A program made the translations under genes and the position numbers. The notes under the pieces were generated by a model that was given only the letters and a program-made list of their open reading frames with translations, searched no databases and was not told where the DNA came from. 64,000 bases of DNA from Paragordius varius (taxonomy: Eukaryota > Animalia > Nematomorpha), in NCBI GenBank assembly GCA_964247055.1, contig OZ176052.1, positions 3,162,001-3,226,000 of the forward strand. The letters run 5' to 3'. Shown one piece after another: positions 21,901 through 60,545 of the stretch; the first letter of the stretch is position 1; every line of letters begins with the position of its first letter.

Positions 21901-24900
21901 GAAATAAAATGCAATACGTATTACAAAAAAGTCATGTGAAATTATTATTCTAAATTATTTGTGTTAATTTAAGGAAAAAATACACGTGCTGAATATAAAA
22001 AATAGTTTGATTTGAAAAGTTTTAAATTAAGTAAATATATAAATGTTATATAAAAGTAAAAAAGTTATTGTTATTTAATGCCCAAAAAAAATTTGTAATT
22101 GATCAAAATTTATATAATAAATACGTTAATTTTTGACATATAAATATACATTCCATATTATTATTATCTTAGGACGTTTAATTTTAATTGAAATAACAAT
22201 AAAATAAAAATATTATGTTAACAATTTTTGTAATATATATTTAAAAATTTATAACCTTTATTAAAAAAATTAAATGTTATTGATTTTTATTAAAACAAAA
22301 AAATAACTGTTTTATTCAAAAATAAAAAAAATGTAATATTTAGCATTTTTAAAAAATATATAATTAAAAATTCTTAATAATTACTGTGGCTTCACGTCCA
22401 GAAACATAGAATAAAAATTCGATTCGCCCATGTGAATAAAAGCTATCAGGTGATGTGTTAAACAGCTGAAGTATGGAATTATGTAAAAATCCTGCTTCAT
22501 ATTTATAAGGTATAACACCAAACAAAGTTGCTACTGGTTCTATTGAATTAAAAACAATTGAAAAATTGATAAATTTATTTAATTTGTATGACAAAAAGTT
22601 ATAAATGTAAAAAAAAAACTAGCAGACCCCCCTTATATACATACCGAGCCAAGAATTAGTATTTAATCATTTTTAATTTTTTTCTGTAAAATATAAATAT
22701 TAATATCGAATAAATAAAATGGAATAATATTGAATGTTTAACATAAAAATTTAATATTTAATTTAAAAAAAGAGTCGTGATGCGGATAATTAACCATATA
22801 ATTCCGACAATTAGGATTATCAAGAAGAGAGTCTGTCAATGAGTTGGGTATTAATAATTTATTTTATAAAATATATTGAATACCATGATAACATTGTTAG
22901 GCACATATTAATAATAAAAAACTTTACATATATAAATCAATTAAAATTTTTTTTGTTATAAGATTCAAAAAGATGTGCGAAATTACCTTTGAATATTTTT
23001 TATAATTTTTCCTTTTATATATTACATATTCCGAATCATAATTCTTATTCCTCGCTGTAAAGATGCGTATTTTATTTTATATATATTGATATTATTTATC
23101 TATTTTTTGGTTCAATTTTTTGGTTTCATTTAATATTTGTTATTATATATTTTAGTGTATATTTTTTTATCTACTTTTATTCTTATTAATTATATTTTTA
23201 TTTTTTATGGGTGTTTTTTGTAAATCGCCATTCGCTATACGATGGTAGAGGCCAATAGGGATAAGGAATGTTGTAGAGTATGTTTTGCCAGTATAAATGT
23301 TGGTATCTGTTAAGAAATAAGTTATATGATTTAGTTGAAACTATGAGGGTAAAAAAAGTAAATTTTTTGTGCATTCAGGAGACCAGATACCGTGGAAATG
23401 GTACTAAGACGTTAGAGGGTAATTATAAAATGTTTTATTTAGGTTCTACGGATATGGTTACAGTGGGGTTGCTATAATAACGTGTCCAAGATTTGCCAAT
23501 CAAGTAATTGAGGTTAGACGTGCTGACAGTAGAATTATAAGTGTCGACCTATTGTTAAATAAGAGGATTTTTACTATCTTTAGCGTTTATGCCCCCCAGA
23601 GAGGGTTAACTAAACCGGAAAAAGATAAATTTTATGATTTGTTAGACGCAGAAATGACTTCATTAACGAAAGATAGAGAAATCATATTTTGTGGTGATTT
23701 CAATGGGCATGTGGGACAAAATAGAAGAGGTCTTGAGCCTTGGCACGGCGGAAAAGGTTATGGGGTAATAAATAAAAAAGTGGATAGTTTATTAAGATTT
23801 GCTCAATCTTAAAACTTAGCTATCACAAATACCTTTTTTACTAAAAGGGATAGCTACTTAATTACCTACGAAAGTGGAAATAAGAAGTCAAAAATCGATT
23901 ATATTCTGGTACCGCGAGAGTCTGTAAGGTTTGTTGTGGACTGCAAAGTCATACCTTACCCGCAGATTAGTATACATCATAATTTAATTATGTGTAAATA
24001 TATGACAAATATACCAATAAATGCTAAAAAGCGTAAGGTTATAGCGCCGAAGGTAATTAAATGAGATTCCTTAAGAAAGTAAAGAAAAATCTGTAGAAAC
24101 GGTAGGCACACTTAACAGGAACAACGATACAGAAAGTGTTTGGTCAGGTGGCCAAAAAATTAGAGAGGCGGGAGTTAAGGTGTGTGGAATGAAAGGTGGA
24201 AGAAATCAGGTTTGTATAGAGGCATGTTTAAAAGACGAAAGAGAAATCGCGGACAATAAAGCTTTTAAAAGATGGAGGTGTACCCACCACGCAGAAGACA
24301 AAGAAAAATATAAAGGGATTGATATGGAACTTAAAAGGCTTGTGATTATGATCAAACAAGAAAAGACGGCATCATAATATGAGGAGTTAAACAGTACACT
24401 ATGTCTAAACAACGTTTTGAAAATTGCTCGACAAAGACACAAAAAAAAGCTGGACTTGCCCTCTTACGCGACAGCTATTATAAAAAACGGCAAATTAATC
24501 AAGAGGAAGCGAAAATTTTGAAGAGATGGAGACTATTTCCAGGACCTTGAATTGGGGAGTGAAACGAATCTACCCGAAAAACCATTTATATCTCCGCATA
24601 TTGAAAGTATGACAAAAGAAGAAGTCCAGGTTGGTTTAGAAGAGATGTCTATAAATAAGGATGCAGATCCAGACGATATTAACATAATTTGTTGGAAAAT
24701 AATGTCAGAGAAAGGTATTGAATTGACGGATATTTTTAATAATGTAGTTACTATAGGTATGATACCAACTGAATGGAAAGAGAGTTTCACTGTTACCATT
24801 TTCAAGGGTAAAGGAGATATAAATGATTATAGTAAATACAGAGGGAAAAGTGTCGCACACAAGGAAGTTTTTTGATAAAATACTAGAGAAATGAATGAGA

Positions 24901-26897
24901 AAAATGGGAAGGCTAATTGAAAAGCATATAGAAATAAAAAAGGAGTTGCCTGGTATTTTAATCGATATTGAAAAGGCGTTTGACAGTATACCACGGAGTA
25001 TAATATGGTGGAGTATAAGACAAAAAACGTTCCAGAAAGTTACTAAAAATTGTAAAAAACATGTATGACTCTCACCATACCAAAGTTAAAACACACCAAG
25101 GAGTGTCAGATCCTATTGAAATAAACCAAGGCGTCTATCAAGGGTCAGCAATCAGTCCGTTACTATTTATAATATGCATGGACAAAATTTCAAAAGAAAT
25201 GGGGTAAAATATGGGCTGGTATTTTCTTTATGCAGCCTAATAGTGTTGTCAGACGAGTTGCATAAATTGAAAGAGTTGGTGAGCAAATGGATTGATGTTA
25301 CGACGGTACTGTTAAGTTAATAAAAAGAAAACGGATATTGCGGTGTGAAAAAACGAGAAATGGAATTAGAAGAAGGCTGGGTATCAAAAGAGGAGGAATG
25401 CAAATATTAGGAGCGATTTCAGCAGCAGATGGTTTAACGCAAGATATAAATTTTACAATTCATAGTTGGGCAAATTATAAAAGGTCTAAATGTTTTGTGC
25501 GATAAAAAGACTGATCTATAAATCAAGGGTAAGATTTACAGTGGTGTTGTACAGCCAATGATGTACAACTCACAGACATGGGCAATAAAAAAATCAGAGG
25601 AGAAGCACTTTGAGATTACTGAAATGACAAGGTGAAGAATGTCTACATAAGAGGAAGTACGGAAGTCAAACCGGTAACGCAAAAAATGATGTTAAATCGT
25701 CTAAGATTGTTTGGACATGTAGAAAGAAGAGATAATAACTACATTAGTAAAAAGATTGATGATTATATTGTGAAAGGCAAGAGGGGAAGAGGGCGCCCTA
25801 AAACGCGATGGATAGATACAATAAAGAGGGACATGGCAAAACTGAACTTAAAACGCGAGGACGCCATAAACAGGATTCTATGGCGAAATAGTTTACGGAT
25901 ATGACCGCTCGAAAGAGTGATATCATATAATGTAATTATTATTATTTTTATTCCCAATAAAATCATTTATAATGCTGCAAATATGATATATAGACGTTCC
26001 GCATCAAATTTTTTATTGATGAAAAATAAAGTCATTGAGTAGTGCTAACGAACAAATTATCATTGACAAGGAGGCTTTTAACATAAGTTTGTATTTTTAG
26101 TGTAAATTTAAATTATTTAAGCGTTTAAATAAAACATTATTTCACGAACTTTAAGTTAATATAGTCATAATTTGTGGGGAAAATTAAAAAATACATAATA
26201 TTTGACTCATTCAAAACAATAAACTAGCGGTTAAACTTACAAATACAAAATGCCTAACTATCATTTTTTTAAATATACAAAATAATTAAAGATGTCAAGC
26301 AAGAAATTCGTAAATATATAATTTTACCTTTTGTCCATATTTCTGAAAAGTGTTTATTTTCTTTTTCGGGCCAATGTCTTCGTTTAAAATTCCGAAAAGT
26401 TAATGAATGTTTTAAATGAAATATATTAAATTGTGATATACGTTTTTGATCAATTAAATCCTAAAAAATATTATGCAATGGACGAGTTACTTGATAATTT
26501 TTAATACATGATTTTTTGGATTCAATTATATTTATGTCGCAATGGTTATTTAAACCGTCCTCAATAAATCGTTTTAACAATTCACCATTCCCTTAAATAT
26601 AATATATTTATACCTGGATTTATATAATAGAGTTTTGGTTTGTGCTTTAAAATTGGCATTAATTGTTTAGATATTTCGGCTATATGTCATAAAAATAATT
26701 GGCAAACTTGTAAATTGGGGTTTTATGATGGTATAGTTAATGAGAGGGCTTCTTACAGCGGAGTTAACAACTTTATCAGCTTTTGTAAAGTTATCAAATG
26801 AGTCGATTAAGGCTGGATCAAGACACAAAGTTGACAATAAACGATTATCAAGAATATGTTTCGAGAAAATCGCTGTAGAAACCACATGAAGACGCAT
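18973..26897 (-). CDS. TFB2M: Mitochondrial transcription factor B / dimethyladenosine transferase, TFB2M-like (8 exons)
   Basis: Exons 26708-26897, 26614-26679, 26491-26591, 26328-26460, 22385-22539, 21738-21890, 20782-21046 and 18973-19424 splice in phase into one ORF. Motifs recalled from TFB2M: KPKLYYINPGNG (SAM motif I), WTKEPVATLFGVIP, SHGRIEFLFYVS, YKLFYDIEFLDERP, HLISMTPKPDL, FRPEE. TFB2M versus TFB1M is judged from remembered motifs only. Start codon and the 20782 donor are inferred. Confidence 0.8.
23225..25950 (+). mobile_element. Dead RTE-clade non-LTR retrotransposon (APE endonuclease + RT), antisense in TFB2M intron 22540-26327
   Basis: APE motifs LCIQETR, SVYAPQ, CGDFNGHVG and IDYILV. 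RT motifs IDIEKAFDSIPR and QGSAISPLLF; the catalytic YADD reads YAA-stop-stop. C-terminal LRLFGHVERR...RGRGRPKTRWID and an (ATT)n-like tail. Multiple stops and frameshifts. Confidence 0.93.
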
Positions 26898-29336: not shown

Positions 29337-32300
29337 TTAAAATCCCAAATCCCATACCAATTTAGGTTTGACTTTTTTAATGGTTATGCATCGAATTATG
29401 TCACCAGGTCGGTATCTGATTGACATTGGATTCATATTATTGCTCGTACTGGCAGTATGTATCGTATGATCATTTATAGCGTTTGTCAATTGATTTTTCC
29501 CATCTTTACGTTTGTTGTTTAATGATTCCAAAATAATTCCACATTCATTACCCTTACTAATTTCATCAGCATCAATCTTAAAACTTTTGAGGGAACCAAT
29601 TTTACCCTTGAACAAGGTTTTATTGGGGGTGGACTTTGATAATAATGCATGGTTTTCACGAAGCAAATAGGCATAAGTACATTTTTTATTCATCGTTCCA
29701 CTCTCTACCATACACCCGGCTACTGGGATTTTATTTTTGCCTTCAGTCACTATGAATTCTTGCTTAACACGCGCTTCACCTAACATGTATGATTCATAAA
29801 AAGGGAAATTTAGCGGATATAACGTAAAACTAAAAGATAAATATTTTTGTAAAACTATTCGTTTTAAACCTTACTTTTTCTTGAATAAACTATTTAATAA
29901 AATGTATAAATGATGTTACCATTTAACATCTCTCATTATAATTTTAAATAATCAGTTATACTAAAAAATCAAGGTTCAAATAGTACATAGGTCTTTTAAA
30001 AAAATATTTGCCTTTATATTTTTACGTTTTGTTTATATAATTTCAATTTTTATTATATTATTTATAGGAAAATGGAACTTTACAATTAAATTTTGGGGTA
30101 AATGACATTTTTATACCTATTTTCATTACTAAAATCAAACTTATTCTACCAAAATCAAAACTTTCTCTAACAAACTCGCCACTTTTTTAATCAAACTCCA
30201 TTTATTTTTAATTAAATCTTATAATAAAATGAAATATTTAATAAAATGTTTAATCCATTAATCTTTACTTTTTTTTAAGTTTATTTTTAAACTAAAAATA
30301 ATTAATTTAAATTTTCCAAGATATATAACAAATCATAATTTTTTATCCAACGAAAATAATTGTTTTTATTCATATCAAAAAGTTTATTTTTATTTTACTA
30401 TTCTTATATTATTAATTTTGTATGCCAGACTCAAATTTATATATATTTTTTTAAACTTAGTTAATAAAAAAAGTATATTTGAATATATCGAAATTCACCT
30501 TTAAATGCTTATTAAACTTAAAAATTCATAAAAATTCTTAATTTAATTAAAAATTGTTGACTTTGATGGAAAAAGATTGAATTCGTTTAAAATGTTCAAT
30601 TTCGTTTCAAAAAATGATAAATTTAAATGAAAAATTTACAAATTACTATTTAATTTTCACAAAAAATATAACCCATAACAACTTCTTCATCTAGCTCTGG
30701 TAAGATTGCGGTAAGTTCTGACATTAAATCATCATAAAGTTTGTATATAATTTGATGTCTTTTAATTTTTATGGACGGCTCTTCCGTGGCAGATTTGGTA
30801 TTTGAAACATTCGAGTCCACATTAAAAGCATATATAATACCTATTTTCAATCATAAATAATAATTTATATAATTATTTAATTAAAGATATAGCTTTTAAT
30901 TAAAATACATTATTTTTTGGCTCAGACGCGACATTTTTTGCTGTTGTTTAGAAAAATTATTTATAAAATTGTATAGTTATGGAAAAATCTTTTATATTAA
31001 AAAATATTGCGTAAAAATAAAGTTTATGTGTAACATTTTAAATTTGATGGGTTAATAAAACTCAACTCTAATTTAATAAAACTAAAACAATTATCATTGA
31101 GGATTGTGGCATCGTTTAACTATACCCTATTTCTAAATATAATTTCCAACAATATAAAGTTAGGGTATACAATATAGATTATTTTAAATATCAGGATGAA
31201 AAAGCGCCTTTAAGAAATTAATAAACTTGTCAATATAATTCTAATAACCATTAAAAGCTCTAGCAATTTCAACATCAAAGTCGGTCACTGGACCAATCCC
31301 ATAATGAAGGATATCAAGGGTACAATAATTTTGTGTTTCATCAAAACTTTCTACCATATCAAGGATGGCTTCAAGTGAACCATTTACATCCGCTACATAA
31401 ATTAGGTTTAGGGTTAATTGCAAGGATTGAATTTAAAAAGAAACCAAAAGTTTTTTTTATATAAATCATTATCAAATCAATTGGATTTTAAGGGTTTCTA
31501 AGATGAATACTATCAACTTTATATGTGTTGCTATGGAGATAAAATTAATATATTCTTAAAATTTTATGTGAGGTATTTGTAATATAAAACGCATTTAAAA
31601 ATAATTTATTGTATGTCCAACAAATAAATTAAATTACCTTTTATTACGATGGGGAGATGTGGTTTTTCCACAATGTTATTTTGGTTGTCCAAAAATGTTT
31701 TTTCAGACGTAGACGGATGCGATTGTTGCTGAGAAAGCATCCGTGGTAACCTTTTGTATTTTAGTGCACGTCGCATTTCTAAATCTTTTTTATACCTAAA
31801 ATATGTTGCTATACGAAAAAGTTGTATTAAAATGAATAATTATCAAATTTGTAAAAAGGTATTTTAGAAATAAATATTAGTATATACAGACTTTAGTCTC
31901 TTTATTATGTAAAGAAACCCTAACAAGGTTTGATCAAGACTTGAGAAAGATTCAACATTTATTTTCCTAGAGCTGGTAAGAAATAACAATGACATAATAT
32001 ATTGTTTTTTAAAAACTATATTCTTACAAAACATAATGTGTGCCCGAGTTTTATGCCTAAAAAGCGAATTTTTAATAAAGATTGAATGAAATGAACATAT
32101 ACTGTTCTAGATGTGCGCTTCGTTGAACTTCAATAACTTTCCAATCCTCTTCCATTTTTTCAAGCGATTCTTGTCGTTCAAGGGCTCGAATAATTTGTTT
32201 GGCTTTTTCCTAAAAACACAACAATCAAAAAATGGAATGCGATAATTTTTATCGCATAAAGAAAGACAATTATCACATTTACATTATAAAAAAGCAAATT

Positions 32301-35300
32301 TTTAAAAAAATAAAATGTTTGATTTTATAGTTTATCCTCTATAAAACGGAACTGTTATACATTTAAATAACATATTTCCATTATAATAGTATATAAATTT
32401 TAAAAAATGTATAATCAATTAAATGTTTTAAGATAAAACATTTTATACTGCGGGTGATGATTAAGGTAACCATTTATATATGAATGACATAAAAAAGTAG
32501 TATTTTTATAGCAGTTGCAGTACCTATTAAAAAGTGTTTATAAGAGATTTGGTTTGGTTTGATATGCTAAAAAATATTAAAAATCGGTTATTTTTCTTTT
32601 TAGTTTAAAAAATTTTTTTATAAGCTCTTTATTGTTACCTCAGATTCTATTTGATAAATTCGGGAACCAACCATTGGAAGTGATTTCCATCCAATAACCT
32701 CTGCTGGGTATCTTAAACAAGTGATTAAAAATAGCCATAAAAATATATTTTAAGTTTAATTAAAATAATCATATTTAAAAGATAAAATATTTTATTGGAT
32801 TTCAACAGAAGTTTTTGATTTATGTTTTATAATCAGTGTAACAAAAAGTGACGTTAAAATTATTGACCCGATAATATTCGCTGGTAAACAACTTAAATTG
32901 AAAAAATATCACGATTTTATAATTATAACTTGCTAAACTTATATCTTTAAAGAAAGCAACATTGTAAACCAAAAAAATTCTAATATTTTATATATAAATA
33001 TATATATATATTTATATAGCCAAATCATAATTAAACTAATAATTTGAAAAAATACCCCGGACACACCGATTTCAGTATTTGACCATTTTCCCCAAACAGC
33101 GCTCTAACTTTACAATAAGCCGGAGATAAATCAATCGTAGACTTTAAATTCTCATCGGATGGATTGTTAATTGATTGTTCTTGTTGCATTTTTTCATTAA
33201 ACAAGGAAATGAGTATGTCACCTTTCTTAAGCGTTCCTCGTGTAATTAGCAGTGTACTTAATATACTGTGTTGTTTTATATTAATTATAAAAGTTATTTC
33301 TAATTAACATACTCCAATTTAAAGTAAATCATATATAGATATATTGGCCCAAAATTTTGGTAACATTAACATTTACCTATCGAATTCACCCTTAACCACT
33401 TCGATTCACCTTTAAACATTTCATATTGCCCCTAAATATAAATAAACTGTTTTCGCGCTAAATTAACACATATTTAATACTATTTCATGAAAATAATAAA
33501 TACTAATCTCGTTTTTAGCTTGTATTATATAATATAAGAAATGAATATATTTACCCTCTGTTTTTATCCAGTTTAGATTCAATAATTGCCCCTTCAACCT
33601 TACCAATATAATCAGCGCGTAAATCCAACATTTCTGCTTGTGCAAGAACGGATTCTAATAAACCATTTATGTTGGTTCCCTAGAGGCATACAGGAAAAAA
33701 CGTTTTAAATAAATTTATAATAATATACATCTCTCAAATGTATTTTTTAAAAATATATACTTTAAAGTTTTGAAATTATGTATTTTTTGCAAAATTTCAC
33801 ATTTAATGCTAAATTATTTAGGATTTTAGCTAAACTTTATATTTTTGTTGCAAAATAATTCCTATATATAGTGCCAACGTAAGATTTATGAAAATCCATA
33901 TTTAAACCCACAAACCTTTTGTTTTTATATGCTTCATATAATTCTCTTTGTGTAATATTTTTGTGCTAAAAATTATATTTTTACCGACAAATTTATTTTA
34001 AAAAAATTTACAAAAATAGATATATTAACACAAAAACATATAACCATATAAGAATTATATTTCGAAATGAAAATCCCGATTACAGAAAAATTGTTTAAAA
34101 ATCATACTTTAAGTGCAGATATTGGTACAACTTGAATATCCCCGCCAAATTCTTCGGGCGATAAACCATGTGATAATAAATCATATTTCACTTTTTCCTA
34201 CATAAGCAACAAACCAATAAATCAAATAATTATGTAAAATATATAAAATAAATTTTTCTTGACATTTTTATTAAAAAAATATAACATACCAAATCCAAAT
34301 TGGGTTTATCAATTTTGTTGAGTGCTACAATGATTGGTACTAAAAAACGATATCAAAAATAAAAAAACATTTTATACAACTATAAACAAATAAGCTATAG
34401 GGTATAAATTTAAGTATAAAACTAATATTTTTATAGAAACCTAAAGAAAATCATAATTAAATAATAAAATTTTAATATTTCATTAACATATTTATAATAA
34501 CACACTTATAATTATGTGGATACACAGATATATATCCTACATGGGTACTATATATTTTATACATTCCACATATTCTAAAATTCCCTTAATAAATATATGC
34601 ACCAAATAAAACATTTTTGGGGCTTAAATCAATACAATAAAATTTCTATCCAATCACAAAAAAACAATCTTAAAGGACTAATCAAATACCAGTTTAGTGT
34701 CACTTAATGTGGCCAAAAAATTAAGTCAATTAAATCAAAAGTTTAAAGTGAATACTTTTAGATTCTTGGGCAAATTTGATGGATTGTACGGTTTGAGACA
34801 TGACCCCATCATCAGCTGCAACGACTAAAATAGCTAAATCAGTTAAATGACATCCACGGCTACGCATATTTGCAAACGCGGCATGTCCAGGAGTATCAAT
34901 GAATGTTATCACATCTTTACTGGCGTTTTCGAGTTTGACTGTGGCCAAAAAAAATTCATATTTAAATTTAGATTGAAAAAAAAACCCTCGTTAATTTTGT
35001 GCTTAAAATATAATTAAATTGATAAATACGGAACGTAAAACACAATCAATGATATTTTACGTTTGATATAATTATTTTTATAAGATATATTAAATTCATA
35101 TTTAAATTTAGATTAGAAAAAATAATCCTCCTTAATTTTGTGCTTATAATATAATTAAATTGAAAAGTATACAATAGAGATGTACATTGTAACACAATTA
35201 ATTATGTATGCTACGTTTGATAAGATAATAATATTTATAAGATAAATTAAGGTTGCAAAAAAATATGGCTGTTCTTTTGAATCTTAAATTTTGTCTTTAT

Positions 35301-36559
35301 ATTTTTACGTTTTGTCCGGATGTTTATAATATATATATATACCTTAGGTTAAAGTTGTTTTACATTTCTAATTGAATTAGGGATAAAGTAAAACTAAATG
35401 CCATTTTAAGATCAGTTTGGTTTAAACTGTAAGGCAATAAAGAATATTTATATAATTATAATAAATATAGATAAATTATAAATTTGTAAAATTGACTTTA
35501 CAAGAATATACAGTGATGTTATAAAACCCAGCCAAGTTAAAACAATTACAATCACAAAGTTATTTAGATCAAAAGGCACCGAATATCAATTTATTTCCCC
35601 CCTTATTTATTATTGTATTAAAGTATCAATAAATATATAATTTATTAAACAAAAAATTTATTACAAAGACAATCATATATTCCGACGATCGATTGATTGT
35701 TAATCAATTACACACAAAATTTTCACAATAAAGTAATATGAACTCTTCTATCATATAACAAGTGTAAAATATTCGACAAAAAGATGTAAAAGTATATACA
35801 AAAAAATCGACAATAACCTCCTAATTTTTTTTAATTTTTATATTTTTTTTCATTTTTAGCGATAAACTTTGCTACCCCAAATTGAGATAGTGTGTAAAAG
35901 TTTCAAAATTTTATCTTCAAAAAAATTGACGGGAATCGATCCTGCAGTTTCTTTCTAAGGGAGCTTAAACGATACAAATATAGTTGTTGTTTAAATTAAT
36001 TATATAATTTTAAACTTGCATATCTTCTATTCTATTCTTTCTTTGAATCATATTTGTCTTTTGTTTACTACTTAGAAGTATTTAACAAATTCTAAATTAT
36101 TTGCGAAAACACTTGTGACAAGTTAACCATATTGTATCAAAATAATAGGCTATTATACTTAGAATTAAAAAGTGGTAATATTTAAACCATTTGACTTAAA
36201 ATCAATGGCATTGCAAGCCAAAATTATTTTGTTCGAACCGAAATATGATTAAAAACCATTTATTTTCTCGAAAAAATGGTTGTTGAAAGATATCGTATTT
36301 TATAAAAAAAATACGGAGTGGGTTTAATTCCAAATTGTAATATATAATTTTCATAGCTGGCTGACTATAGTTGGTAAAACGTGTAAAATTAAATCATATT
36401 GCATTAAAAATGTATTTAATCTACATCATATTCAATCAAAAAGTTAGTTAGTTATGTCTATATTATTGCGCGCTGATATAGAAACAAACACTTAAAAGGT
36501 GTAGGGCATATCAATTATATGAATTTATCACATTATTAACTTAACAATTTTAACCTCCT

Positions 36560-36605
<46 letters not shown>

Positions 36606-39600
36606 ATATTATATTTTCAATAAAATTTTAATGGCTGTTTTCAAATTAATTTATATTTAACTTAAATATTTGTATATTTGTAAGTATTAACATATTTTTT
36701 TTTCAATTCATTATGACATAATAAATATTTCGAATTAACTGATTAAAACAAATAAATACTACTACTACTACGTTTTCCGTGTAATATCAAAGATCAGATA
36801 GAGAGTAATGAATAAAAAAAATCTTTTTTCAAATATAAACTCTTTATATTATATTGGTATTCGTATTTTATCATTGGAAACAAAGAAACGAAACGACATA
36901 TAGGTATATAGTTAGAAAGAGTTACCTGTAAAAGGCGAAATTAAAAAGAAAACTTTATAAAAAAAATAATTATCAAAAATTTAGATTATTATGTATATAA
37001 ATTAATTTAATATAAAATTTAATGATTATATATTAATTATCATTATAAATATTTTTATTTTTATAAATTTAATATTTATAACATTAAACTGAGTGCATTC
37101 AAAAATTTTGCAAACATTCATATTTAATCCGAAAATTGTTGTAAATCCAATCCATGTAAACTTTAACAATGATAATAATTAAATTTGGTACTCACTCATA
37201 TAACTGCATTTTACAACTTTTGCAGCGAGGAAAAAACCATTCTGAAAACAAAAAAAATGTCAAATATTGTTAATCAAAACTAATTGTCATATGAAGATAT
37301 CTTAAACGCTCTCAATTTGGGAATATATATATAAATCCGATAACATCTTTAAAAAAATATAGTATTTGTTAAAAAGTCCAAGTATGGCTCCATACAATTC
37401 CGTTATCATAACCCTAGTTATATTGGCTTCAGGAACTTTGTTACCAAATTGTTTTACCCGTTTTTGGGTATTGGGATCGAACCAAAATAAAACGCATTGG
37501 TTAGATAAAGTAGAAAAAACTACACCGATAGATTTAACATCAACATCTATTCGTGTTACCCCAACATTTGATAGCAATGATGTTAATGTGATTAGTTACG
37601 GAGATCAAGACTATTCAACTATGAAATTTAGGCGAAATCCGGTCTGGAAAATACCGAGATCTCACGCCTCCTATAAAACATTATTCCTTTACGATGGTTT
37701 TGGAGGTAATAAATTACAACAAAATTTAAACAAAAACTAGACAATGAAAAGTTGAATGTTTGTTAAATAGTAAAAATTTTTTGGACATTAAATGTCGATA
37801 AAAGCTTATCATAAGAGACATAAAAATATCAACATATAATTTTTTTGTCTTTCACTCATTCTTCAATTAATATAGCTAAATGTTATCTAAGTTTTCCAAG
37901 TAATATAAACTAAATTTTCAACATTTTTTTTATTTATATGCAGGTAAACGAGTATCAACATCCTTCTCCGACTTTGATAACACAAATTATGCAGCTCGTA
38001 TCAAAAAGTTTCAAGACATAAGGAAAAAATTTGTCCCTACCGCTTTTTATCATGATATGTTTGGGACTATTCCTAAACGGGATTCTGCCCCTCTCTTTTA
38101 TGCTGGCCACAGATATCATCTAAATAAAATGTATAATAGATCATCACCGGTGGCCACCAACTTACATCCCAGCATAGTAAGGGATTGGCAAAGTAATGCC
38201 CAATACTTGATACGGAATGATAGGAAGGAGAATCAAATGAAAACGTTTTGGCAAACCGAAAATGTTAAAAATCATGAACAAGGTATGTTACCGAAATCTC
38301 CGGATTCTAATAACGTTGTTGTGGATGAAGACGGTGAACAAGATTGGATAAATGAACACCACGAGGAACTGCCTGAAAAAGAATGGGACGATCTGATAAA
38401 TCGAGAAATAAATGATGTAGAACACTCCACATACAATGAATTTGCCCCCAAAAGTCGACCCAAACTGGTGAATGCTAAAAGGCGACATAAAAAACTAAAC
38501 CAAAAGCACGGTAAAAAGGGCGATGTTGACAACAAAGACACTAATACAGAAACGAATTCAGGGGATACTGCTCAGAATGAGTCGGAAAAACCGGTTAAAA
38601 AGCCTAAACAAAACCGGGACCAATTTTCATCATCCTTTTTATACAATAACGATAATAATATCAATAATCACAAAAATAAAAATGAACATATGCATCATAA
38701 TTACAATAATATTTGGTCATTCTCACAAGAGTTTACTACACCGATTCCTAGTAAAAACAATGATTTAATAGAAAAAAATGAAACATATCTTACTCTCACA
38801 AGGGAAAAGAAGACAAAATATGGCCAGCCAGTTTCGTCTCGAGATACTCCAATTTGGCCCAATACAGTCAATGATACATATGTACCGGCGACTACTCCTA
38901 TATCTCATGTCAAAAATGAACATAACGCTCAACCAGAGTACCAAGATGTATCAAAGAAAAGTTTGACCAGCACTGTAGGCGAAATCGAAGTGGGTAAAAA
39001 TGAAACAGAAACTCCTTCATTCGTGTACGTGGTGTTGGATGAAACATTTTCCTTGCCCGCCATGATAAATAAGAAATTGTTGAGGCACGATAGCGCAAAC
39101 CAATCCCTCATCAAGAATGTCATGATACCATTCATAGCAAGGGATCCTGTATGGAATCCAGATTGGTCTAAACAGTTTAACATTTTAAGTCAACGTTACG
39201 ATAATAACAACAGGAATCGAAAGATAGGAAACAGCGACGATGATCGACACATTCAACCCCAATTCCCAGTGTTATCGAATGAGTCATTTGATTCAGGTAA
39301 ACGACGTCAAAATGAAAACAACCATCCCAAGTTTGATGATAAATCTCTCAGTCTTTTCCCGTACGTTATGGCGGCCTACCTTGAAAAAGAGGATAGTAGT
39401 GGAAGCAACCCAATATTTTATTTGTCCAATGCAACAGATTCAGGAGGAAACCATTTTCAATTAGAAGGACAATCGGATAGTTTTGGGGTTGGTAATTCAA
39501 ACGTAGATACTAATCAAAATATGTATCAACATTTCACCAATCATGGCAAAAATATGATAAGTGTAGAAAGTGAACCAAGTATAGAAATGATTGAGGAATG

Positions 39601-42600
39601 GTTAAGCCGCAAAAAGAATTGGCATGTTCCAGGTAATATATAGAGATTTGATTAATTTATGCTAATCGTTGCAAAAAAAGTTATTTGGTTAACCGAGTGT
39701 TTATAATATATTTTTAAATTCTAATAAGTTAACAATGTGCATCTCGACTAATGTGTTTTATCGAGTGTTGTTAAGCCATAAAGATAAAGTTTTTACAAAT
39801 TTTTCTACAAGAGTTCAATTTGCAAGGCACTATAGTTAAACAGCCAATAAAGTTTGAATTAATGTGCTGCACATTAGGAGTCGAGTCCCAATACTTTATG
39901 AATTTGATTGGAATAAGGTTTTGGCGAAGTGCTTATATGCCAGCTTCAACGTATATAGTGTAATTTTTTGCATGATATGAGGAGCCATTATTACTTTACA
40001 ACTTAACTTTATCATTGTGAACAAAAAATTTTTAAAAAAAACGGTAAATTTAATTATCTCAAACATGCATGATTGTAGGAATAGAGTGAATAGGTTGCCT
40101 TATAAAAAATTCTCAGTTTTTGTTTTTATAACAAAATAAACTCTTCTGAAAAAAGGACAGACAGATTTTCTTGATAGTAACAATAAATCGATGTAATTTC
40201 AACTTAGAATGAATAGTTATCATATATGATGGTTTAAAGTTACTTAATTCAAACTGCACCTGTGTTTATTCCGATAATCAATTAACTTTTGACGGGTAGG
40301 TAAATCCGTTTTTCAAAAGATTGCGTTAAAAGTATTGGTTAATTGATGCCGTTTTTAGGGTGGATGGATTAAAACAGATATTTAAGCCCTTAGAATTTAA
40401 AGTACGCCAATGTTATAAAGTAGAGTTTTAGGTTTCAAACAATTTTTAAATTACAGTGAAGTGATTTTCATATGTATCGATTTTTGGAAACCTTTAATGC
40501 TAAGAATTAGCACATATAATGCTTTACTTGGGGTCAAGCATGAAAAAATAAAAAATGTTTGGCTAATCATGTAATATTCATTGTTAATTTATCATGGAAG
40601 CTAATCTTAAACATAATATTAAGGATGTCAAAAGGTATTTGTATATACCATTTGCACTTTAAGAGTGTCATTGAACAGTTCAAGTTGGTCCTTGAACACT
40701 TCAAGTTGGTCCCTTGAACATTTTAAGTTGGTCCTTGAACACTTCAAGTTAATCTTTTAAATTTTTAAATTTTGATTTAACCATAATTTTTGCATTTATT
40801 TTTTATTTTATTATTAATTAATCTAATTTTCTTTATTTTATATTTATTCATTTAAAAATAAATTTTTTTATTGAAAAACCACTTTTTTGTTTCAAACAAT
40901 TTTCATTTCATGTTAAAATCTTATAAATATCCAAAATTATTTTAAGAAATTAATAAAGATATACGGTTTCTCAAAGATTAAAAGTAGATATCGTTTTAAA
41001 ATATATGTTAAATAATAGAAAATAGGTTAAAAACAATAAAATAGATGAAATATTTAAGATTTGATTGATAAAAGTTATAAACAAAACAAAAAAGTCAAAG
41101 GACCAACTTGAAGTGTTCAAGGAGCAACTTGAAATGTTCAAGGACACTCTTGAAGTGCAAATGGTATATTAATTAACAATAAAGGGCAACAGTTAAGTTT
41201 AAAATAAATTGAATATTTTTTATAATAAAACGCCTGACAAAAAATTGTTAAAAAGCACAAAATTTTTATTACCTTTCAACCAATCATATATTTATTACCT
41301 TTACAACATTTCATATTATGATAAATTTAGGTTATGCCGCAACAAAATCGACACCTATACCAATTGATTTTGATCCCTTACTATTGGAAACAAACGAAGA
41401 AAAAATGAAATTTTACCTTAAATCATATCAAGTTCTGGCACACGAATTATTCGGTGATCAGTCCCATGACACGGAAAAAGAAAGTGATATGGCCAAAAAC
41501 TTCAATTTCAAACCATTCACAAAACTAAATTATAAAAAACAACCCATACCTTACGGAGTAGAAAAGGGATATGCGGGCAACCATGTGAATGATAGAAATA
41601 ATCAAAGAGTAACCCAACCATCGGATAAAATCAATGTTGACCCGCCGCTCAAATACTCATATTTGCAACGTTACCTTAAGCATAAACATGCAGAAGCGAA
41701 AAAAAGAGCCAAAACTCATCAAAGAGATGACACCGAAAAATCAACTAAACCCAATCCATTTAATTTTGGTGCGATTATTACACAGCAAAAACCAGAAAAT
41801 AATGTAATGAGACCGCCGCCGTCCATAAAAACACAAAATTCTCAAAACTATTTCATATATGACATACAAAAAAATCGTGAAAGCGGTGCATTAACTACTA
41901 ATGTTGCACATCAAAACCAGCATAATCTCTATTACAGTGGTGTGGAAAAAGAGTTACCTGAAGCGACAGATTTAATTCTCAATACAAACCATAATAAGGT
42001 TAGGGATAAAAGTATCATTACTCCCAGCACGAATAGATGGGTCATCAATCAAAATATTTTCCCAAATTACATTGATGTCCGGAATGAAGCTCAAATAGCT
42101 AAACATCCACGTTTGGCAATAATCAATCGAAATAAATACAATTTTCCATTAGCGCAAGATTCTAGGGTAAGCGACGACACATTTGCAACAAATAACGAAG
42201 GAAATTTAAATATGCAATTAGTTCGGGAGTATGTTAGTAATCAGAATAGTGAATTACTTCCATACAATATGAACTCCAAAGACGGTCAAGATACCTCTAA
42301 TACCGATGATAGATTATTAGAATTGAATAATCGAGAGGAACACGTCTCTAAAACAATCGATCCATTTTTGATTCCGAGACCGAATCCACCATCATCAGAA
42401 TTCGCAGCAAACAATCAAACTTTTGCCTCGAAAAATAATGATATAGATACCCTAATGTTTAGAAATAATGAAAGATATAACGGTATGAAAATACAGGAAA
42501 ATGTTAATCAAAACGATGGTTTCATAGATGCAATAGTATCTCGCAGTTATCTATTACCATCTTTACAGAGATCAAAGCAGACGAAAGGTACATACATGTT

Positions 42601-45600
42601 TACATTCAATGGTATATCCAAAAATTTTCCATTGAAAAAATCTAATTTAGTATTCGAAGATAAAGAAAAACGCAGAGAAATAAAAAGGAATATATTGAGA
42701 GTGAAAGATACATTTGGTCGAATGGTAGACGATAAAAAGAATGTGAAAGCTTCCAATATGTATAAAACAAAATTTATGGAAGAAAAACCACAGTTTTCCT
42801 CCAACAATGAGCCAACAAGTGACCAATTTCTATCGAATTTGGGCGATATAAATGCCGCATATTTTGGTAGCCAAAGTGTAATGAATAAAATTTTGAACAG
42901 GTTAAAAAGTTCGGACACTGATCGTATTGAGAACAACAACAACAAAGAAACCAATAATGGGATGAATGGAATATATAAAATCGTTTTTAACGATAGTTCT
43001 CAACGAACAGTAAAACCTTACAAAAATGTGAGATTGTGGAAAGATTATATCCAGTCGTCTGACGCTTCACCCCATCTCATGTACAAGGAGTATGTCGATA
43101 GTCAGCCTAAATCTAGGCTGAAAACAAAATCTGACCCTAATATTGACCCATACAGTATGCCTGAAAATGTGGACTTTATAAAAGGCTCAACCCCGACAAA
43201 AAGTGTGCAAACGAAAAACAATCACTTCAATCATCAATACTCAAAGTTTCCTAAAACATATGCTCATTCTTTCATTCGAGGTGGTATCAGTCAACCTAAT
43301 TATATCAAATTTGACTCTGATGACACAAACATTAAGAAAGACAGTAATAAAGCTACGATTTCTGAATCATCAGCAATCGAAACAAAACCATTACCACCAT
43401 CTTGGCAAAAGGGCATAATACCATCGACAACGACATCACCATCACAAATGATTAAATCCATAAAAAAATATTCACAGTTGAATCCAGCCAAGAGGAGGTT
43501 TAAAATGACTAAAAATTTTCTCAATCCATTCATCCATACGAATTATCATCATTATCCGGGTCGACAAACATACGACGAAAGGGGTAGTCAGGGAGCCCAA
43601 GTACCTACCATTGTTAAAAAGTATAACTGGGCCTTGGAAGGTGAAATGGCTAGGAAAGCAACGGCTACGAATCCATCTACACTGATTCATTCTCAGCGTT
43701 TACCACCTCCTCGAACATTTTTATACCATCGTCAAAGAAATAATGCTAATCATAATAATTATTCCCCATCAACAAAAAATAGATACAATTCAGCAGATAA
43801 ATATAATATGGGAGAAAATGTCGATGGATATTCCAAAATAAATAAGATTTTGGAATACCTGAAGGGTAAATTTCAAATTCAGATAGAAGGTGATAACATT
43901 AGCATCAAGGGTAGATTGGATAAAAATGCCGATCCTCAACTGTCCTTAAAGGGTCTAGGGGATAAACTAAATAAAGAGATTACACAATTTACCTCTAATC
44001 AGCACAACAGGTTACAGTTTAATAATGACAATCAGAATAAAAAACCCTCAACTTCGGGCATAATACTCAATCATGGACATATTGGTAGGGGCTTGATTGT
44101 AAACAAAAATAAAGGCTTATATAACGGTCATAATCCTATGACTCTTACAAAATCAACTGGAAAAAATACCTATCATATCGTCGATACAGATAAAAATCAT
44201 GATAGCCTTGATAATGAGGATGAAATAAAATCTTCCAAATCCTACAACAGCAATGGCAAATCAAAATATAACTACAATAATAGGCTCGACAAAAAGGCAA
44301 GGAAAAAAAGACCACTAAAAGATGATATCAATTTTTTTGATCCCATAACATCCATAGTAGAAAGGTTTGAAAGAAGTCGGAAAGCTAGTCATCGAAGGTT
44401 ACCAGTGCCCGTAGTTCTTGCAAATAATCATCCATTATCCTTTAAAAGGGATAAAGACGACCCTGGATCGCTATTTACAGTTCCCAAGTATGATCCATGG
44501 AGACCGGAAGTACGACCACCTCGAAGCAATATATTTTATGTGCCAAACCAATCGAGATTGTATGAACGTAGACCTTACCAAGAGGAGGATTGGGCTCTCC
44601 AAAGCGTCGATGGACTTAAAGTGTCACCTTATCCATACAATAGTCAAGCGACAATGTCACCATGGTACCTGAACAAAAACCGTAGAAATTACAACATGAA
44701 AAGAGGAGATTATAATGAAGATGAAGTAAGAACACAAAATATGATAGATTATAACGCTAAAGGTAGTAATTTAAAAGACAGTGTTATGTATAATCAATCT
44801 TTGCCTGTAAGTGATGATGAAACCAATAATCAGATAATGGAAAATGAGATAGAGACAACGAGTACAATCAGTAATGTTGGTGTGGATGAAGAAAATATAA
44901 ATAATAATTCTGAATTACCAATCACGGCAGAAGAGGAACAAGCATTAATCTCATATTTAAATGGGGAAATCGAGAACTTTAATGGCAGCCAACAAGGTAT
45001 CAGTGATGAACAAACTACGCGACCGGTACAAAGGCCATTAGATACATTTTACAAGGATGGAAAAATTGATACCTTTTACAATGATTTGTATAATAAGGTT
45101 TTAAACCATAATAATAAAACAAAAAATCAAAAGGGTAATAACTTCCCTAAATTTGCCCCGTTAGTCAATGATTTAGGGTATTTGGGCAGTTCCCATAACG
45201 TAGGAGAGCATGGTAAAACCGATAATTTAGAAAAGCCGACTGATACATCATCATATGCGCACCGGGGTAATCTGCAACATAACGCTTATGTGCCTAACCC
45301 AGAAATTATTAATACTAAACACAATGTGAAGAAAAACTATGGCATAGAAAAACAGCACAAAAATTTAACGCTCATGGTAACAAATCAAGACAAAAAGCTA
45401 CCGGTTAGACCCGAATATGAAGTGATGGAAAAACGTTACAACAGCCTAAATAATAGTATGGATCAAGGATTAATCTCAAAACTTATCTCTTACATACCTC
45501 AAGACGCTAACACAGGCACAGATTTTATAAATCGTGTAATGCAAATACTTCCCTTAAATGCAAACCAAAATATCGATGTGGACGATGAGCCTGAACAACC

Positions 45601-48600
45601 CAATCAAAAAAATGGAAATGAAAGCAGGAATGTTAATATGAATGGAGAATACCTAAAACAAGGAAATTACAAAAATTCGACGATTAATAACCAATATTCT
45701 GATAATGTAAATGCAACTCACATATCGAATTAAATGATACATACCTTGGTTTATGCTAAAAATTTTTATATTTTTGATAACTCTCATATAATGTTAATAA
45801 ACATGTATTTATTTAATAGATATTATTAATTATGCTGTTATAAAATAAATATCATATATAAGCTAATTTAAAATCATAAAAAGGAAATTATTACTAAAAC
45901 AGTTATAAAACGAACAGATAGGATAAATTTATATCTATTAACAAATTATTAACTGTGTCCCAATATCCAAATTTTTATATATAGGACAAAAAATATATGA
46001 CAGGTGTAATGTTTTAAGGGGTTTTTCATAAAAAGGAAATATTCAAAGGAAGTCAATTATTTATCTATTTAAAATATTGTAGGCTTCTACAATAAATTCC
46101 AGGTAATATATGAATGGTGTGCTAGAAAAACTGATTGCTTTCAAAGCGAATTCGGCCATTTTCAAACGTCTTTGATATTATAGCGCTGTTTTGCGAGGGT
46201 GTGTTCCATCTTATGGCGCAGTGTCTTGAGAGTTCAGAGGATGCGAAAGAATTTCTCATCGCAGCAAATTCATGGTGTCTTTTATTAGTTTTGCTGTGTG
46301 AGATGGAGCATCGACGTGTAGCCAAATCACTTTGCCATGTCTTCTGTCAAATTTTTGAAGTTTTATGATTAATGATTGGTTTTAATTATTCATTAGATAG
46401 TGTTGTTTATTAACGGTTTCAACATATTTCAAAAGTTTATAATATACAATAACGCTTTAATTCCCAAATCACAATTTTCTTGCCGAAGCCATTTGGCATT
46501 AGTGTAATGAATAAGCTTGGCAAAGTAAACAATTTTTCCGCTTAAAGTTATAAAATAAAGTCATTTATTATATTCGTCCCGATTCAAAGCATAAATGATT
46601 TCTTTTTGTAACGTTGAATCGGAAATTCACAATTCACTTTGCGATTTTCGATTTGACACTTATTCAACTTCAGTCGGACTAATTTACCGAGTTTACATTC
46701 TTATTGCTCGTAGATATCTATTGAATGGTTTTAGGTAATGTAATGACCCTGTCATGTTGTTAAATTTGAGTGGGTCATTATCTAATAAGTCTTGCACTTG
46801 CGCGTATTTGCAGTTGTGTGATTTGCCAGAGCGCCCACCATCTTTAACTCGTAATTCGAATCCATATTTCACATGTGTCAATGCATGTTCATATTTCTGA
46901 CAGTAAACGAAACTTTACACAGCCTAATTTTTTAACAATGCGTCCCGCGAAGTTCTTTATCAGGCACAAAATTGGATTATTATTAAATAAAAATAAGACG
47001 GCATTTTTTGGAAGATATCACCTTGTGTGCGTCGTTTAATGTCAGATAAACAAAATAGTGTCTGATAAAATAATCGTCTGCGTAACTCGCAGACGTTTTT
47101 TCCGGTATTAATTACACCTGATATGTAGATTATTGAAAAAATAATAATTTATTTATTTGAAATATGTAATATAGATTATATAATAAAAATCAGCTGATTT
47201 TAGAAGCAATTTAGTCGCAGATATTATTACAGACGAGCTCTAGATTATAAACTATTTATTCAAGGCTTAAATATATCTTTTAACCAAATTTTAAGAAAAT
47301 AATTAACTCCAAAAATTCGAATATCATGTTAAAAACTAAATAATGAACCAATGCAAATGATCTATAATTATATTATAACAAATTCAAACGAACGGTTTAT
47401 TAAACATCTTGTCTGTCACATTTGATGTCTAAAATTGGCCATAAAAATATTGCTATAAATCATCTAGTTAGCATCTTTATGATAGTCGTGTTAAAAAAAT
47501 TCTATGCTCATATATAAAATAATTTCACTATTCTATTATAAAAAATTTTTTTTTGGTTTATAATTTTTTAGCAAGAAGACATTAAAATTCGAAAATTTGA
47601 TAAATATTTGTTTAAAATTATCTAACCGGTAAAAGCTCCAATATGTTGCGTTATACCACCAAACTCAGAATCTACTATACGGGATTTGCGTATACAATCA
47701 AGCAGGGTAGTTTTCCCATGATCTACATGTCCCACAATAACTACAACCGGGCATCGTTTCAAAAGTTTTGAGTGAGGTGGTAACGGTCTAATTTAAAATT
47801 TGGAGTATTTAAAATTTAAAGATTTATTTAAAAGTAAGCATGCTATTTCTCATACAGTCATTATTGGGTATCCTTATCAAAATCAATAACTAATGAATTG
47901 TCCAATTATAGATTTATTATGGCCCAATATGTATTGTCTATCTACAAAACAGAATGTAAATTGTATCAATAAATTAAATAAAAAGTTAAATTTAAAAATC
48001 TTTTGGACCTAAAATGATACATTATCTATTAGATAAAAAATGTAGTTTTTACATTTTATATTTCAATTACAGAAATTAATTAATCTCTTTTGAGTTTTTG
48101 GTATAATTTACATCTAAGAATAAAACTCCCTCCGAAAACTAAAATTTAATGTATTAAGCAATTAATATAAAATCTCACTAGCACGACAAATTAAATTATA
48201 AAAACCATAATCTGATTTTGATTATTTATTTATCGAAAAATATACATCGTTTTGACGAGAAATGAAAAAATAAATCATATTACATTATAAGTATATATAT
48301 ATTGCTAGAAAGTTATTAATTATGCCAAAAAGCATAAAGAGAATTATTAAATTATAATCTTAAAAAGTGAAAAAATAACATAAACCAATAATACTGCCCT
48401 TTGTTGTATATGCTATTTGGCAATAATAATAAACTAGCAATGTATAGTTACTCATACTGTAGAGTTAGCCTTAAGAACAACCTTAATATGATCTTAAAAA
48501 ATTTATTAAATTTCGCTTCAAAATGTAATTTAATAGAAGCACAAAATAAAATTAACGATATTACTCGGGTTGAAAGATAAAGTTTTCAGGATGTTTAATT

Positions 48601-56430: not shown

Positions 56431-57363
56431 ATGAAAATTTCTGATCAAGCCTCTACCCTAATTTTTAACATTGGGGCTGTTATGGTGGCCCTTATTCAAG
56501 GATGTTTTTTAAACTATTATATATATCGATATCAAAAATCCATGTTTTTCTACTTTTGCTATTTTGATATCGTTTTAATCATTATCATATCTGGTTTATG
56601 GAAATGGACTCATTTTAAAATAACCGAGGTCCTAGATAAACAGAACGTTAGGCGATATGGATTATTCCTTCATTGGGATTCTAATTTTTGGTTTTTCTAC
56701 TCAGTATTTCTAATTATTCGATTAGCATTCATCTCAAAAACTATTGCTCCGAATATTGATGAAAATATGTATTTTGGTTCTACCGCATTAAAATTAATTA
56801 TGGCTCTATCTTCAATTGTTTTTATCCTTATCGCTTTAAGAGATTTACATTCTACAAATTACGAATTTAGTGCCGAAATTAAAATGGTTTTATTTTCTGT
56901 TCCCCTTAACATATTTGACAGTGTGGATATTTTGGAGGTACTTTTTTACAAAGACACAAAGCTTGAAAGAAATTGGATCATAGAAAATATTATGATTATA
57001 TTAGGGTGTATTAATTTTATCCTACCTTATTTAAATATTCTCTATCTTGATCTCATTGTACATCGGGAAAAGTATCCAACTTTTTACAAGTTTGGTACAT
57101 TCATTCAAGTGTTTTACAAACTTTTTGGGCTATTCTTATTGAACATTCCCTATTTCGTAATAAGGATTGTGGTTTGGATTACATTTGATCATCACATTTC
57201 AACGTTTGCCATAAAAAATGTGCTTTGTACATTTCTAGATTTTCTCGAGTTACTCATGTTAATTGAAACACTTAATAGGCTTCCTTCAAAGTCGGCTCCT
57301 GGAGGGAAAACCGATTATACTCCTGTAGTAAATGACTTACCTACAAAAACTGCACTTGAATAA
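56431..57363 (+). CDS. TMEM121/CECR6-family multi-pass membrane protein, paralog 1 (intronless)
   Basis: 310-aa ORF with about 6-7 hydrophobic segments. Motifs IFDSVDILEVLF, CINFILP, LNIPYFVIR and FAIKNV resemble invertebrate TMEM121/CECR6 as I recall it. Confidence 0.75.
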   Translation: MKISDQASTLIFNIGAVMVALIQGCFLNYYIYRYQKSMFFYFCYFDIVLIIIISGLWKWTHFKITEVLDKQNVRRYGLFLHWDSNFWFFYSVFLIIRLAFISKTIAPNIDENMYFGSTALKLIMALSSIVFILIALRDLHSTNYEFSAEIKMVLFSVPLNIFDSVDILEVLFYKDTKLERNWIIENIMIILGCINFILPYLNILYLDLIVHREKYPTFYKFGTFIQVFYKLFGLFLLNIPYFVIRIVVWITFDHHISTFAIKNVLCTFLDFLELLMLIETLNRLPSKSAPGGKTDYTPVVNDLPTKTALE

Positions 57364-59170: not shown

Positions 59171-59600
59171 TTAACATTAAGCAAAACCCTAGATTTCGAG
59201 AATAGCTACTTAGGATTTTGTAGTTATCAATTTAATTAACTTAGCATCACTCTTTTTGTTGGTGTTATATTTTTCATTAAAGAAATCCTAAATTAATATC
59301 CGAGCAATACATGTGTACAAGGGTGAATTTGGATTGTAAATGGTATATGTTACAATCTTAACATGTGATTTTACAATAAAGTCCAGAAAATCATATTATG
59401 AATGATATTTTCTCGTATTTTTTTCAATAACATTGATAAATTTTAAAAAGCTCTTCTAGCATAGCTTATATTAACAAAGTTATTTTTCTTTATACACTTA
59501 AAACACAATGGCTATGAACATAAACAATTACTTTACTTAATATACAATATATGTTGATATTTTAAAAAAAATCTAATTTTTGTTTTAAAATTAGACATTG

Positions 59601-60545
59601 ATGACAATTAATCGATTTTCCATTTATCTCTTCAAAATTGCGGCAAACATTATTGCCCTTACTCAAGGATCACTCCTAAATTACTACATTTATCGTTATG
59701 ATCGGTCCAATTTCATCTATTTTTGTTCCCTTGATGTCATACTATTGATTATAGTTTCTGGGGTGTGGAGATTGGCTCGTGTACAAATTGCACGCATATT
59801 AGCACAGCGAAACCAGCAGGCCTATGGATTATTTTTGTGTTGGGATCTCAATTTCTGGTTATTTTATTCCATGTTTTTGATTGCTCGTATTGCTTACATA
59901 TCAAAAACGATTGTACCCACGATAGATGATGACGATGGTGTAGATTTTGGGGCAACGACACTCAAACTAATTATTTCGTTGTCAAGCATCGTTTTTATCC
60001 TTATAGCGTTGCGGGATCTTCATTATACCAGCCATGAATGTAGCAGTGAAATAAAAAATGTACTTTTTTCCATTCCTCTGGACTTGTTCGATAGTATCGA
60101 CATTTTGGAGGTTCTGTTTGCCAAAAATAAAGAATTCCAACCAACACCGACCATTGAAAATATTGTGATTGCACTTGCGTGTTTAAATTTTATCCTACCT
60201 TACGCCAATATTTTGTATCTGGATCTCTTGGTGCACAAAGATAAATATGTTATGTTCGTTAAGTTTGGTCCAACCATACAAGTTTGTCACAAACTGTTTG
60301 GACTTTTCTTGCTTAATGTCCCCTATTTCGTCATGAGGATTGTGGTATATATTACGTTGGATCACCATGTCTCCACGTTTGCCATTAAAAATGTCCTCTG
60401 TACCTTTTTAGATTTCTTGGAATTTGTTATGTTAATTAAATCGCTTAAGCGTGCACAACCCCTCTTGCTTCCCCGTAAAGAAGAAAATGGATATAAACCA
60501 ATCGATCAAGTGGAGGAAGATGCAATTAGCAATCAAATAGATTAA
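59601..60545 (+). CDS. TMEM121/CECR6-family protein, paralog 2 (intronless)
   Basis: ~314-aa ORF, colinear with paralog 1 and sharing long identical blocks (SSIVFILIALRDLH, NFILPY, FAIKNVLCTFLDFLE). Start is the first ATG at 59601. Confidence 0.75.
   Translation: MTINRFSIYLFKIAANIIALTQGSLLNYYIYRYDRSNFIYFCSLDVILLIIVSGVWRLARVQIARILAQRNQQAYGLFLCWDLNFWLFYSMFLIARIAYISKTIVPTIDDDDGVDFGATTLKLIISLSSIVFILIALRDLHYTSHECSSEIKNVLFSIPLDLFDSIDILEVLFAKNKEFQPTPTIENIVIALACLNFILPYANILYLDLLVHKDKYVMFVKFGPTIQVCHKLFGLFLLNVPYFVMRIVVYITLDHHVSTFAIKNVLCTFLDFLEFVMLIKSLKRAQPLLLPRKEENGYKPIDQVEEDAISNQID

Follow-up and report, generated by a model that had tools for sequence, protein, structure and literature searches.

Analysis of a 64,000-nucleotide stretch of the Paragordius varius (Nematomorpha) genome (GenBank assembly GCA_964247055.1, contig OZ176052.1, positions 3,162,001 to 3,226,000 of the forward strand; hereafter the window) placed a single-copy gene of three exons inside a long intron of MTIF2, on the strand opposite to its host. 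Three plus-strand open frames (37384 to 37705, 37944 to 39632, and 41331 to 45733, in window coordinates) join into 2,137 codons (6,411 nucleotides [nt]), the gene avoids cysteine far beyond what chance would produce, and neither relatives nor a fold could be detected for its product. We hold it as nearly certain that the gene is real. The best reading of the product, with a probability of about 0.55, is a disordered protein that is soluble, secreted, and restricted to its lineage and that may form part of a matrix, a coat, or a secretion.

The evidence is overwhelming that chance cannot account for the gene. The window is AT-rich (25% G+C), and exon 3 runs for 1,466 codons with no in-frame stop, compared with 95 and 191 stops in the other plus-strand frames and 72 to 93 in the three minus-strand frames. 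Exon 2 likewise has none, against 24 to 68 in its other frames. Calculated from each exon's own base composition, the log10 probability of such an open frame is -49 for exon 3 and -17.7 for exon 2. The exons form islands of 0.33 to 0.45 G+C (exon 1, 0.33 to 0.34) in a surrounding background of 0.13 to 0.27; the drops in G+C coincide exactly with the proposed boundaries, and directly past the stop codon the value is 0.15 to 0.19. The frequency of G is 0.23 to 0.26 at codon position 1 versus 0.12 to 0.13 at position 2, with A high at position 2 and A/T at position 3, a pattern that resembles that of the conserved MTIF2 exons of the window. The position-specific base frequencies predict 22.9 Cys residues in the 2,028 codons of exons 2 and 3, where there are none, while Trp, which is also specified by a TG- codon, occurs 17 times versus 6.6 expected in the same exons. 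Since Cys is absent and Trp is above expectation, the protein, and not only the frame, is under selection. The sole Cys of the product is residue 23, beside the likely cleavage region of the putative signal peptide. A chance open reading frame (ORF) was therefore rejected on stop counts, G+C islands, codon-position pattern, and Cys avoidance. The first-pass annotation of this DNA, made from the letters and a list of ORFs, had argued that 4.4 kb of stop-free sequence in DNA so rich in AT implies selection and that the product has no Cys beyond its N-terminal region; the first argument gains a figure (0 stops versus 72 to 191; P of about 1e-49), and the second is confirmed, residue 23 being the only Cys.

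The gene model opens with a TATA-like run at 37324 to 37336 on the plus strand (TATAAA at 37330 to 37335, 49 to 54 nt upstream of the ATG). Exon 1 (37384 to 37705), whose frame is open from 37363 to 37740, carries the ATG start, a signal-peptide-like segment, and then ∼85 residues, and it stops one base into a Gly codon. Intron 1 (37706 to 37943; 238 nt, GT-AG, phase 1) has the donor GAG/GTAATA, where the slash marks the splice site, and a T-rich acceptor tract, TTTTTATTTATATGCAG/G (the exon 2 acceptor is also written TTTATATGCAG/G). Exon 2 (37944 to 39632; 1,689 nt, 563 codons including split ones) encodes a hydrophilic, Cys-free segment in which one acidic block is significant and one patch is rich in Lys, and its donor reads CAG/GTAATA. 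Intron 2 (39633 to 41330; 1,698 nt, GT-AG, phase 1) contains a miniature inverted-repeat transposable element (MITE) at 40643 to 41169. Exon 3 (41331 to 45733) follows the acceptor AAATTTAG/G and comprises 4,400 coding nt and a TAA stop at 45731 to 45733; its 1,466 residues are non-repetitive, Asn/Lys-rich, and Cys-free. A candidate poly(A) signal, AATAAA, lies 63 nt past the stop on the plus strand (45796 to 45801), and a second one is found at 45844 to 45849. TATAAA and AATAAA carry little weight as evidence, since hexamers of this kind turn up often in DNA of this composition.

The two introns each interrupt a Gly codon after its first base, and both donors read AG/GTAATA, each of them being the final GT ahead of the stop that closes its open frame. 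The frame of exon 2 opens only at 37904 and that of exon 3 only at 41252, so that few acceptors are possible, and the donors are phase-compatible with acceptors located in these short open stretches. Ahead of the first ATG in exon 2 (38057), 51 codons are open and free of ATG back to the acceptor region. The proposal that three ORF entries form one gene of ∼2,137 amino acids through two phase-1 introns is matched by the coordinates, the GT-AG sites, the phases, and the codon sum, and the codon restored at the exon 1/2 junction does read ...LYDGFG-G-KR, as had been noted.

The host intron spans 34939 to 47626 on the minus strand (12,688 nt, GT-AG, phase 1) and encloses the entire nested gene on the opposite strand. 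On one side of it, a minus-strand ORF piece (47622 to 47762) has the GHVDHGKT motif and covers positions 2 to 28 of the Pfam GTP_EFTU profile, with the P-loop exon ending at 47627; on the other, a minus-strand piece (34730 to 34948) has DTPGH and covers profile positions 62 to 120, with the exon starting at 34938. Joined, these flanking G-domain exons are continuous, with no residues missing, and further pieces of the MTIF2 IF-2 domain lie on the minus strand at 31241 to 31423 and 30650 to 30850. Because the flanking exons join in phase 1 with GT-AG sites, the antisense nesting within a 12.7-kb MTIF2 intron that the first-pass annotation described can be taken as it stands. Genes nested on the opposite strand are a common kind, and so are disordered proteins restricted to one lineage. 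The present gene resembles other animal nested opposite-strand intronic genes in that the whole unit, from the TATA-like element to AATAAA, lies within one intron of a housekeeping gene, and the only unusual point is the share of the host intron taken up by the guest, about two thirds.

Searches for relatives, like the folding described below, were done exon by exon rather than on the spliced protein. With all three exons, Pfam gave no match at E ≤ 1, granin, transposase, reverse transcriptase, and endonuclease domains included, and a phmmer search of the PDB gave no match. For exons 3 and 2, the best score in the ESM Atlas was 0.77, which is below a useful level, and a word-based homology search was blank. 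Residues 267 to 1466 of exon 3 (1,200 residues), the part of the product covered by a full HMMER scan, likewise found nothing among 1.84 billion cluster representatives. A six-frame search of the animal's own 110.6-Mb genome with each exon returned self-matches only and no paralogue, and a search of the literature on comparable genes found nothing relevant. As a calibration, the word-based search was also run with a CECR6/TMEM121-family ORF of the window (56431 to 57363; Pfam E = 1.5e-27) and was blank for it too. This blank for a neighbor of known family suggests that the word-based search is nearly blind for this lineage, which is poorly covered, and the term "orphan" therefore rests mainly on the full HMMER scan. 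Disordered proteins diverge fast. We treat the lineage-restricted, orphan status of the gene as a soft claim, drawn from these comparisons. Since the gene has no homologues and is nested in an intron, standard annotation would probably miss or split it.

The product has a mass of ∼247 kDa (summed over the exons), an isoelectric point (pI) of 9.34 for exon 3 and 6.68 for exon 2, and a grand average of hydropathy of about -1.1. Asn accounts for 12 to 13% of residues (12.6% in exon 3), Lys for ∼9%, Tyr for 4.9% in exon 3, and Ser, Thr, and Pro together for ∼20%. Residues 7 to 20 form a 14-residue hydrophobic core (mean Kyte-Doolittle value, 2.59) followed by Pro, in keeping with the signal-peptide-like N terminus of the earlier description, at least by hydropathy. 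Beyond this core, no 40-residue window exceeds a mean Kyte-Doolittle value of 0.12, no membrane span and no hydrophobic C terminus were seen, and the C terminus ends in neither a KDEL-type nor a hydrophobic sequence of the glycosylphosphatidylinositol-signal type. Exons 2 and 3 fall on the disordered side of the Uversky charge-hydropathy plot. In single-sequence AlphaFold2 models, exon 2 has a mean predicted local distance difference test (pLDDT) score of 35.7 and the final 477 residues of exon 3 have one of 39.5, with only scattered low-confidence helices, which agrees with predicted disorder; models of such low confidence are unsuitable for a search by fold. No repeated peptide unit emerged when the exons were compared with themselves by BLAST (best E = 0.01, from long, low-identity compositional matches), and Tandem Repeats Finder detected no tandem repeats in the exons. 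The characterization of the protein as an orphan with no recognizable fold thus survives in so far as neither a fold nor a relative could be detected, given the two pLDDT values, the blank Pfam, PDB, ESM Atlas, word-based, and HMMER searches, and the single copy in the genome.

Counts of basic sites and of residue windows were compared with 1,000 to 2,000 shuffles of each exon. N-glycosylation sequons (N-x-S/T) number 14 in exon 3 (41333 to 45730) versus 23.8 expected (z = -2.4) and 8 versus 9.0 in exon 2; the deficit in exon 3 may reflect avoidance of N-glycosylation and is a weak hint of passage through the endoplasmic reticulum (ER). There is one RGD triplet (0.2 expected by chance), and S-x-E occurs twice in exon 3 versus 6.0 expected. 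Among charge and aromatic windows, only the acidic block of exon 2, with a net charge of -14 in 40 residues, is clearly non-random.

We propose that this gene encodes a soluble product that would be exported through the ER. A cleavable-looking signal peptide would lead a chain of ∼2,100 residues that is non-repetitive, hydrophilic, Asn/Lys-rich, and predicted to be disordered. Outside the cell, the chain would not be cut into peptides; it would serve whole as a non-globular component of a matrix, a coat, or a secretion (a material, a lubricant, or an adhesive), and selection would hold it free of unpaired cysteines. Export is probable, because the signal-like start lies on an in-phase exon, there is no other hydrophobic segment, Cys is avoided totally, and sequons show a mild deficit; such avoidance of Cys is expected of a long unfolded chain in an oxidizing secretory pathway. 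An extracellular role in a matrix or coat, or as a lubricant or adhesive, is the most plausible one for a basic, non-globular chain that contains Tyr and Pro, with a protein of the parasite-host interface as the other possibility; this role is offered tentatively, on composition. A secreted structural or effector protein was the fallback of the first-pass annotation, and it remains the best reading.

Several points weigh against it. The signal peptide was called from hydropathy rather than with a trained predictor, and its putative n-region has no basic residue. The use of both junctions is inferred from the genomic sequence, and the link between the putative signal peptide and the large exons is therefore of the same kind. 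A low pLDDT from a single sequence is no proof of disorder. The product also has basic patches that resemble nuclear localization signals (NLS), one of them with 7 K/R in 10 residues (P = 0.07 and 0.04 versus shuffles). Finally, the structural role is guessed from composition, for a chain that lacks repeats, relatives, and any known matrix domain.

These basic patches bear first on the main rival to export, in which the product is an intracellular, for instance nuclear, disordered protein, either because the N terminus is not a signal or because exon 1 belongs elsewhere and translation starts at the ATG at 38057. Depletion of Cys and hydrophilicity are typical of cytosolic and nuclear disordered proteins as well, and the exon 1/2 junction is read from the sequence. 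However, the patches are only marginally above shuffles, the 51 ATG-free codons upstream of 38057 remain open back to a good acceptor, and exon 1 is itself an open, G+C-richer island with an ATG and a consensus donor in the matching phase. We consider an intracellular product unlikely.

A second alternative keeps export and changes the destination: the product would be a host-directed effector of the parasite, secreted into the arthropod host and acting in host cells, possibly in the nucleus by way of the basic patches. A signal-peptide-like start, a long disordered body, and NLS-like patches would suit such a role, as would the lack of detectable relatives, which fast-evolving interface proteins would show. 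Yet expression at a parasitic stage and secretion of the product would both be putative, for an effector that has to be delivered the protein is very large, effector genes often expand and this one has no paralogue family, and the basic patches are barely significant; we therefore regard this role as improbable. Equally speculative is a broader version in which the gene would found a class, so far unrecognized, of secreted disordered proteins that are very large, non-repetitive, and free of Cys. The parasite, as a manipulator of its host, would use the product at the host interface, for example as an effector that is exported and gets to host nuclei by means of its basic patches, or to coat the larva or egg string for protection or adhesion.

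The first-pass annotation itself had favored a polyprotein-like, granin-like precursor of multiple neurosecretory peptides, with many basic sites and with aromatic/Pro-rich islands between spacers. Such a precursor would enter the regulated secretory pathway, where prohormone convertases would cleave its dibasic sites and release bioactive peptides, some of them amidated. The signal-peptide-like N terminus and the lack of Cys in exons 2 and 3 would fit, as would the SGKRR site within exon 2 and the formally correct amidation motif ...YDGFG-G-KR where exons 1 and 2 meet. The site counts do not. In exon 3, [KR][KR] pairs are at chance frequency (28 versus 28.9 expected; KR, 8 versus 6.4; RR, 5 versus 3.4), and the excess in exon 2 (19 versus 9.3) is mainly Lys-Lys (9 versus 4.0). 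The G[KR][KR] motif occurs twice in exon 2 versus 0.3 expected (nominal P = 0.04), which favors a precursor, but it is absent from exon 3 (1.2 expected), and the total with the junction included is three in 2,137 residues, numbers too small to decide. The best aromatic/Pro window holds 11 of 25 residues versus a shuffle mean of 9.4 (P = 0.13), so the islands show no excess over shuffles. Nor are there repeated or related peptide units. Granins are acidic (pI of about 4 to 5.5), in contrast to the pI of 9.34 of exon 3, and no Pfam family, granin included, was matched. At 2,137 amino acids, the product is far larger, by several times, than the peptide precursors known to us. The most sensible view of the junction sequence ...LYDGFG-G-KR is that it belongs to the dibasic sites to be had from composition alone, and a neurosecretory precursor is highly improbable on these grounds.

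It is scarcely credible that this is no functional host gene but an ORF derived from a transposon, a reading that was rejected, or one that arose recently and is bound for decay: the lack of homologues and a host intron rich in transposon remains would suit it, but the gene is single-copy at the protein level (self-matches only in the 110.6-Mb genome), has no transposase, reverse transcriptase, or endonuclease domains and no terminal repeats around it, comprises three exons with consensus splice sites, shows a codon-position pattern like that of conserved genes, and has 2,137 stop-free and 2,028 Cys-free codons that need sustained selection.

The proposed secreted disordered product can be set beside several known systems. 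Prohormone and neuropeptide precursors and granins share with it a signal peptide (putative in the nested gene), few or no Cys, a hydrophilic unstructured body, some KR/RR, and one G-KR, and they differ from it in that its main exon has dibasic sites at chance frequency, no repeated peptides, and a basic composition, and in that it is several times longer. From general knowledge, the secreted disordered matrix proteins, such as vertebrate SCPP/SIBLING proteins and insect resilin, are alike in being exported, non-globular, and Cys-poor, with one RGD and richness in Tyr as further likenesses; the nested gene, however, has no sequence similarity to them, is not acidic, is not enriched in S-x-E, and has no resilin-like repeats. 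Mucin-type secreted proteins are also large, secreted, and extended, with long Cys-free stretches, but a mucin was rejected because Ser, Thr, and Pro reach only ∼20% and tandem repeats are absent; N-glycosylation sequons tend, if at all, toward depletion. The product resembles, at most, known secreted disordered proteins, and none of the families tested includes it.

If the protein is secreted, few orphan export proteins of this parasitic phylum, itself barely studied, would be as large, and it would be a candidate material of the cuticle, the egg string, or the host interface. The gene also illustrates that selection can keep 2,000 non-repetitive "disordered" codons free of stops and cysteines, so that the sequence counts despite the lack of a visible fold. 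Apart from this, it is ordinary as a nested orphan gene, and the neuropeptide-precursor idea fails simple statistics.

The MITE in intron 2 has 82-nt inverted arms that are 90% complementary and are made of 21-nt tandem units with the consensus GTCCTTGAACACTTCAAGTTG; it has at least 191 matches in the genome at 74 to 95% identity, many of them half-elements. The G+C-richer block that follows the gene (46100 to 47060) is not a further exon; it belongs to an old dispersed repeat, of which the genome has at least 46 copies at 65 to 77% identity. Outside the host intron, the segment at 23280 to 25904 is G+C-richer and purine-skewed (GC, 0.35; GC skew, 0.28) and has broken plus-strand ORFs that resemble a LINE-type (long interspersed nuclear element) endonuclease/reverse-transcriptase retrotransposon (e.g., ...VNFLCIQETR... 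and ...RGRGRPKTRWID...); it appears to be a decayed copy. An Rfam scan of 34000 to 48500 found no RNA gene. Three minus-strand ORFs of 107 to 154 amino acids (15605 to 15928, 18973 to 19437, and 20657 to 21097) have no Pfam match. The hexamer CAGCTG occurs three times in the window versus 2.3 expected, once in an MTIF2 exon (34813) and not in the nested gene. The CECR6/TMEM121-family ORF used for calibration is one of two tandem, paralogous, intronless-looking ORFs, the other lying at 59598 to 60545 with a Pfam E value of 4.8e-27.

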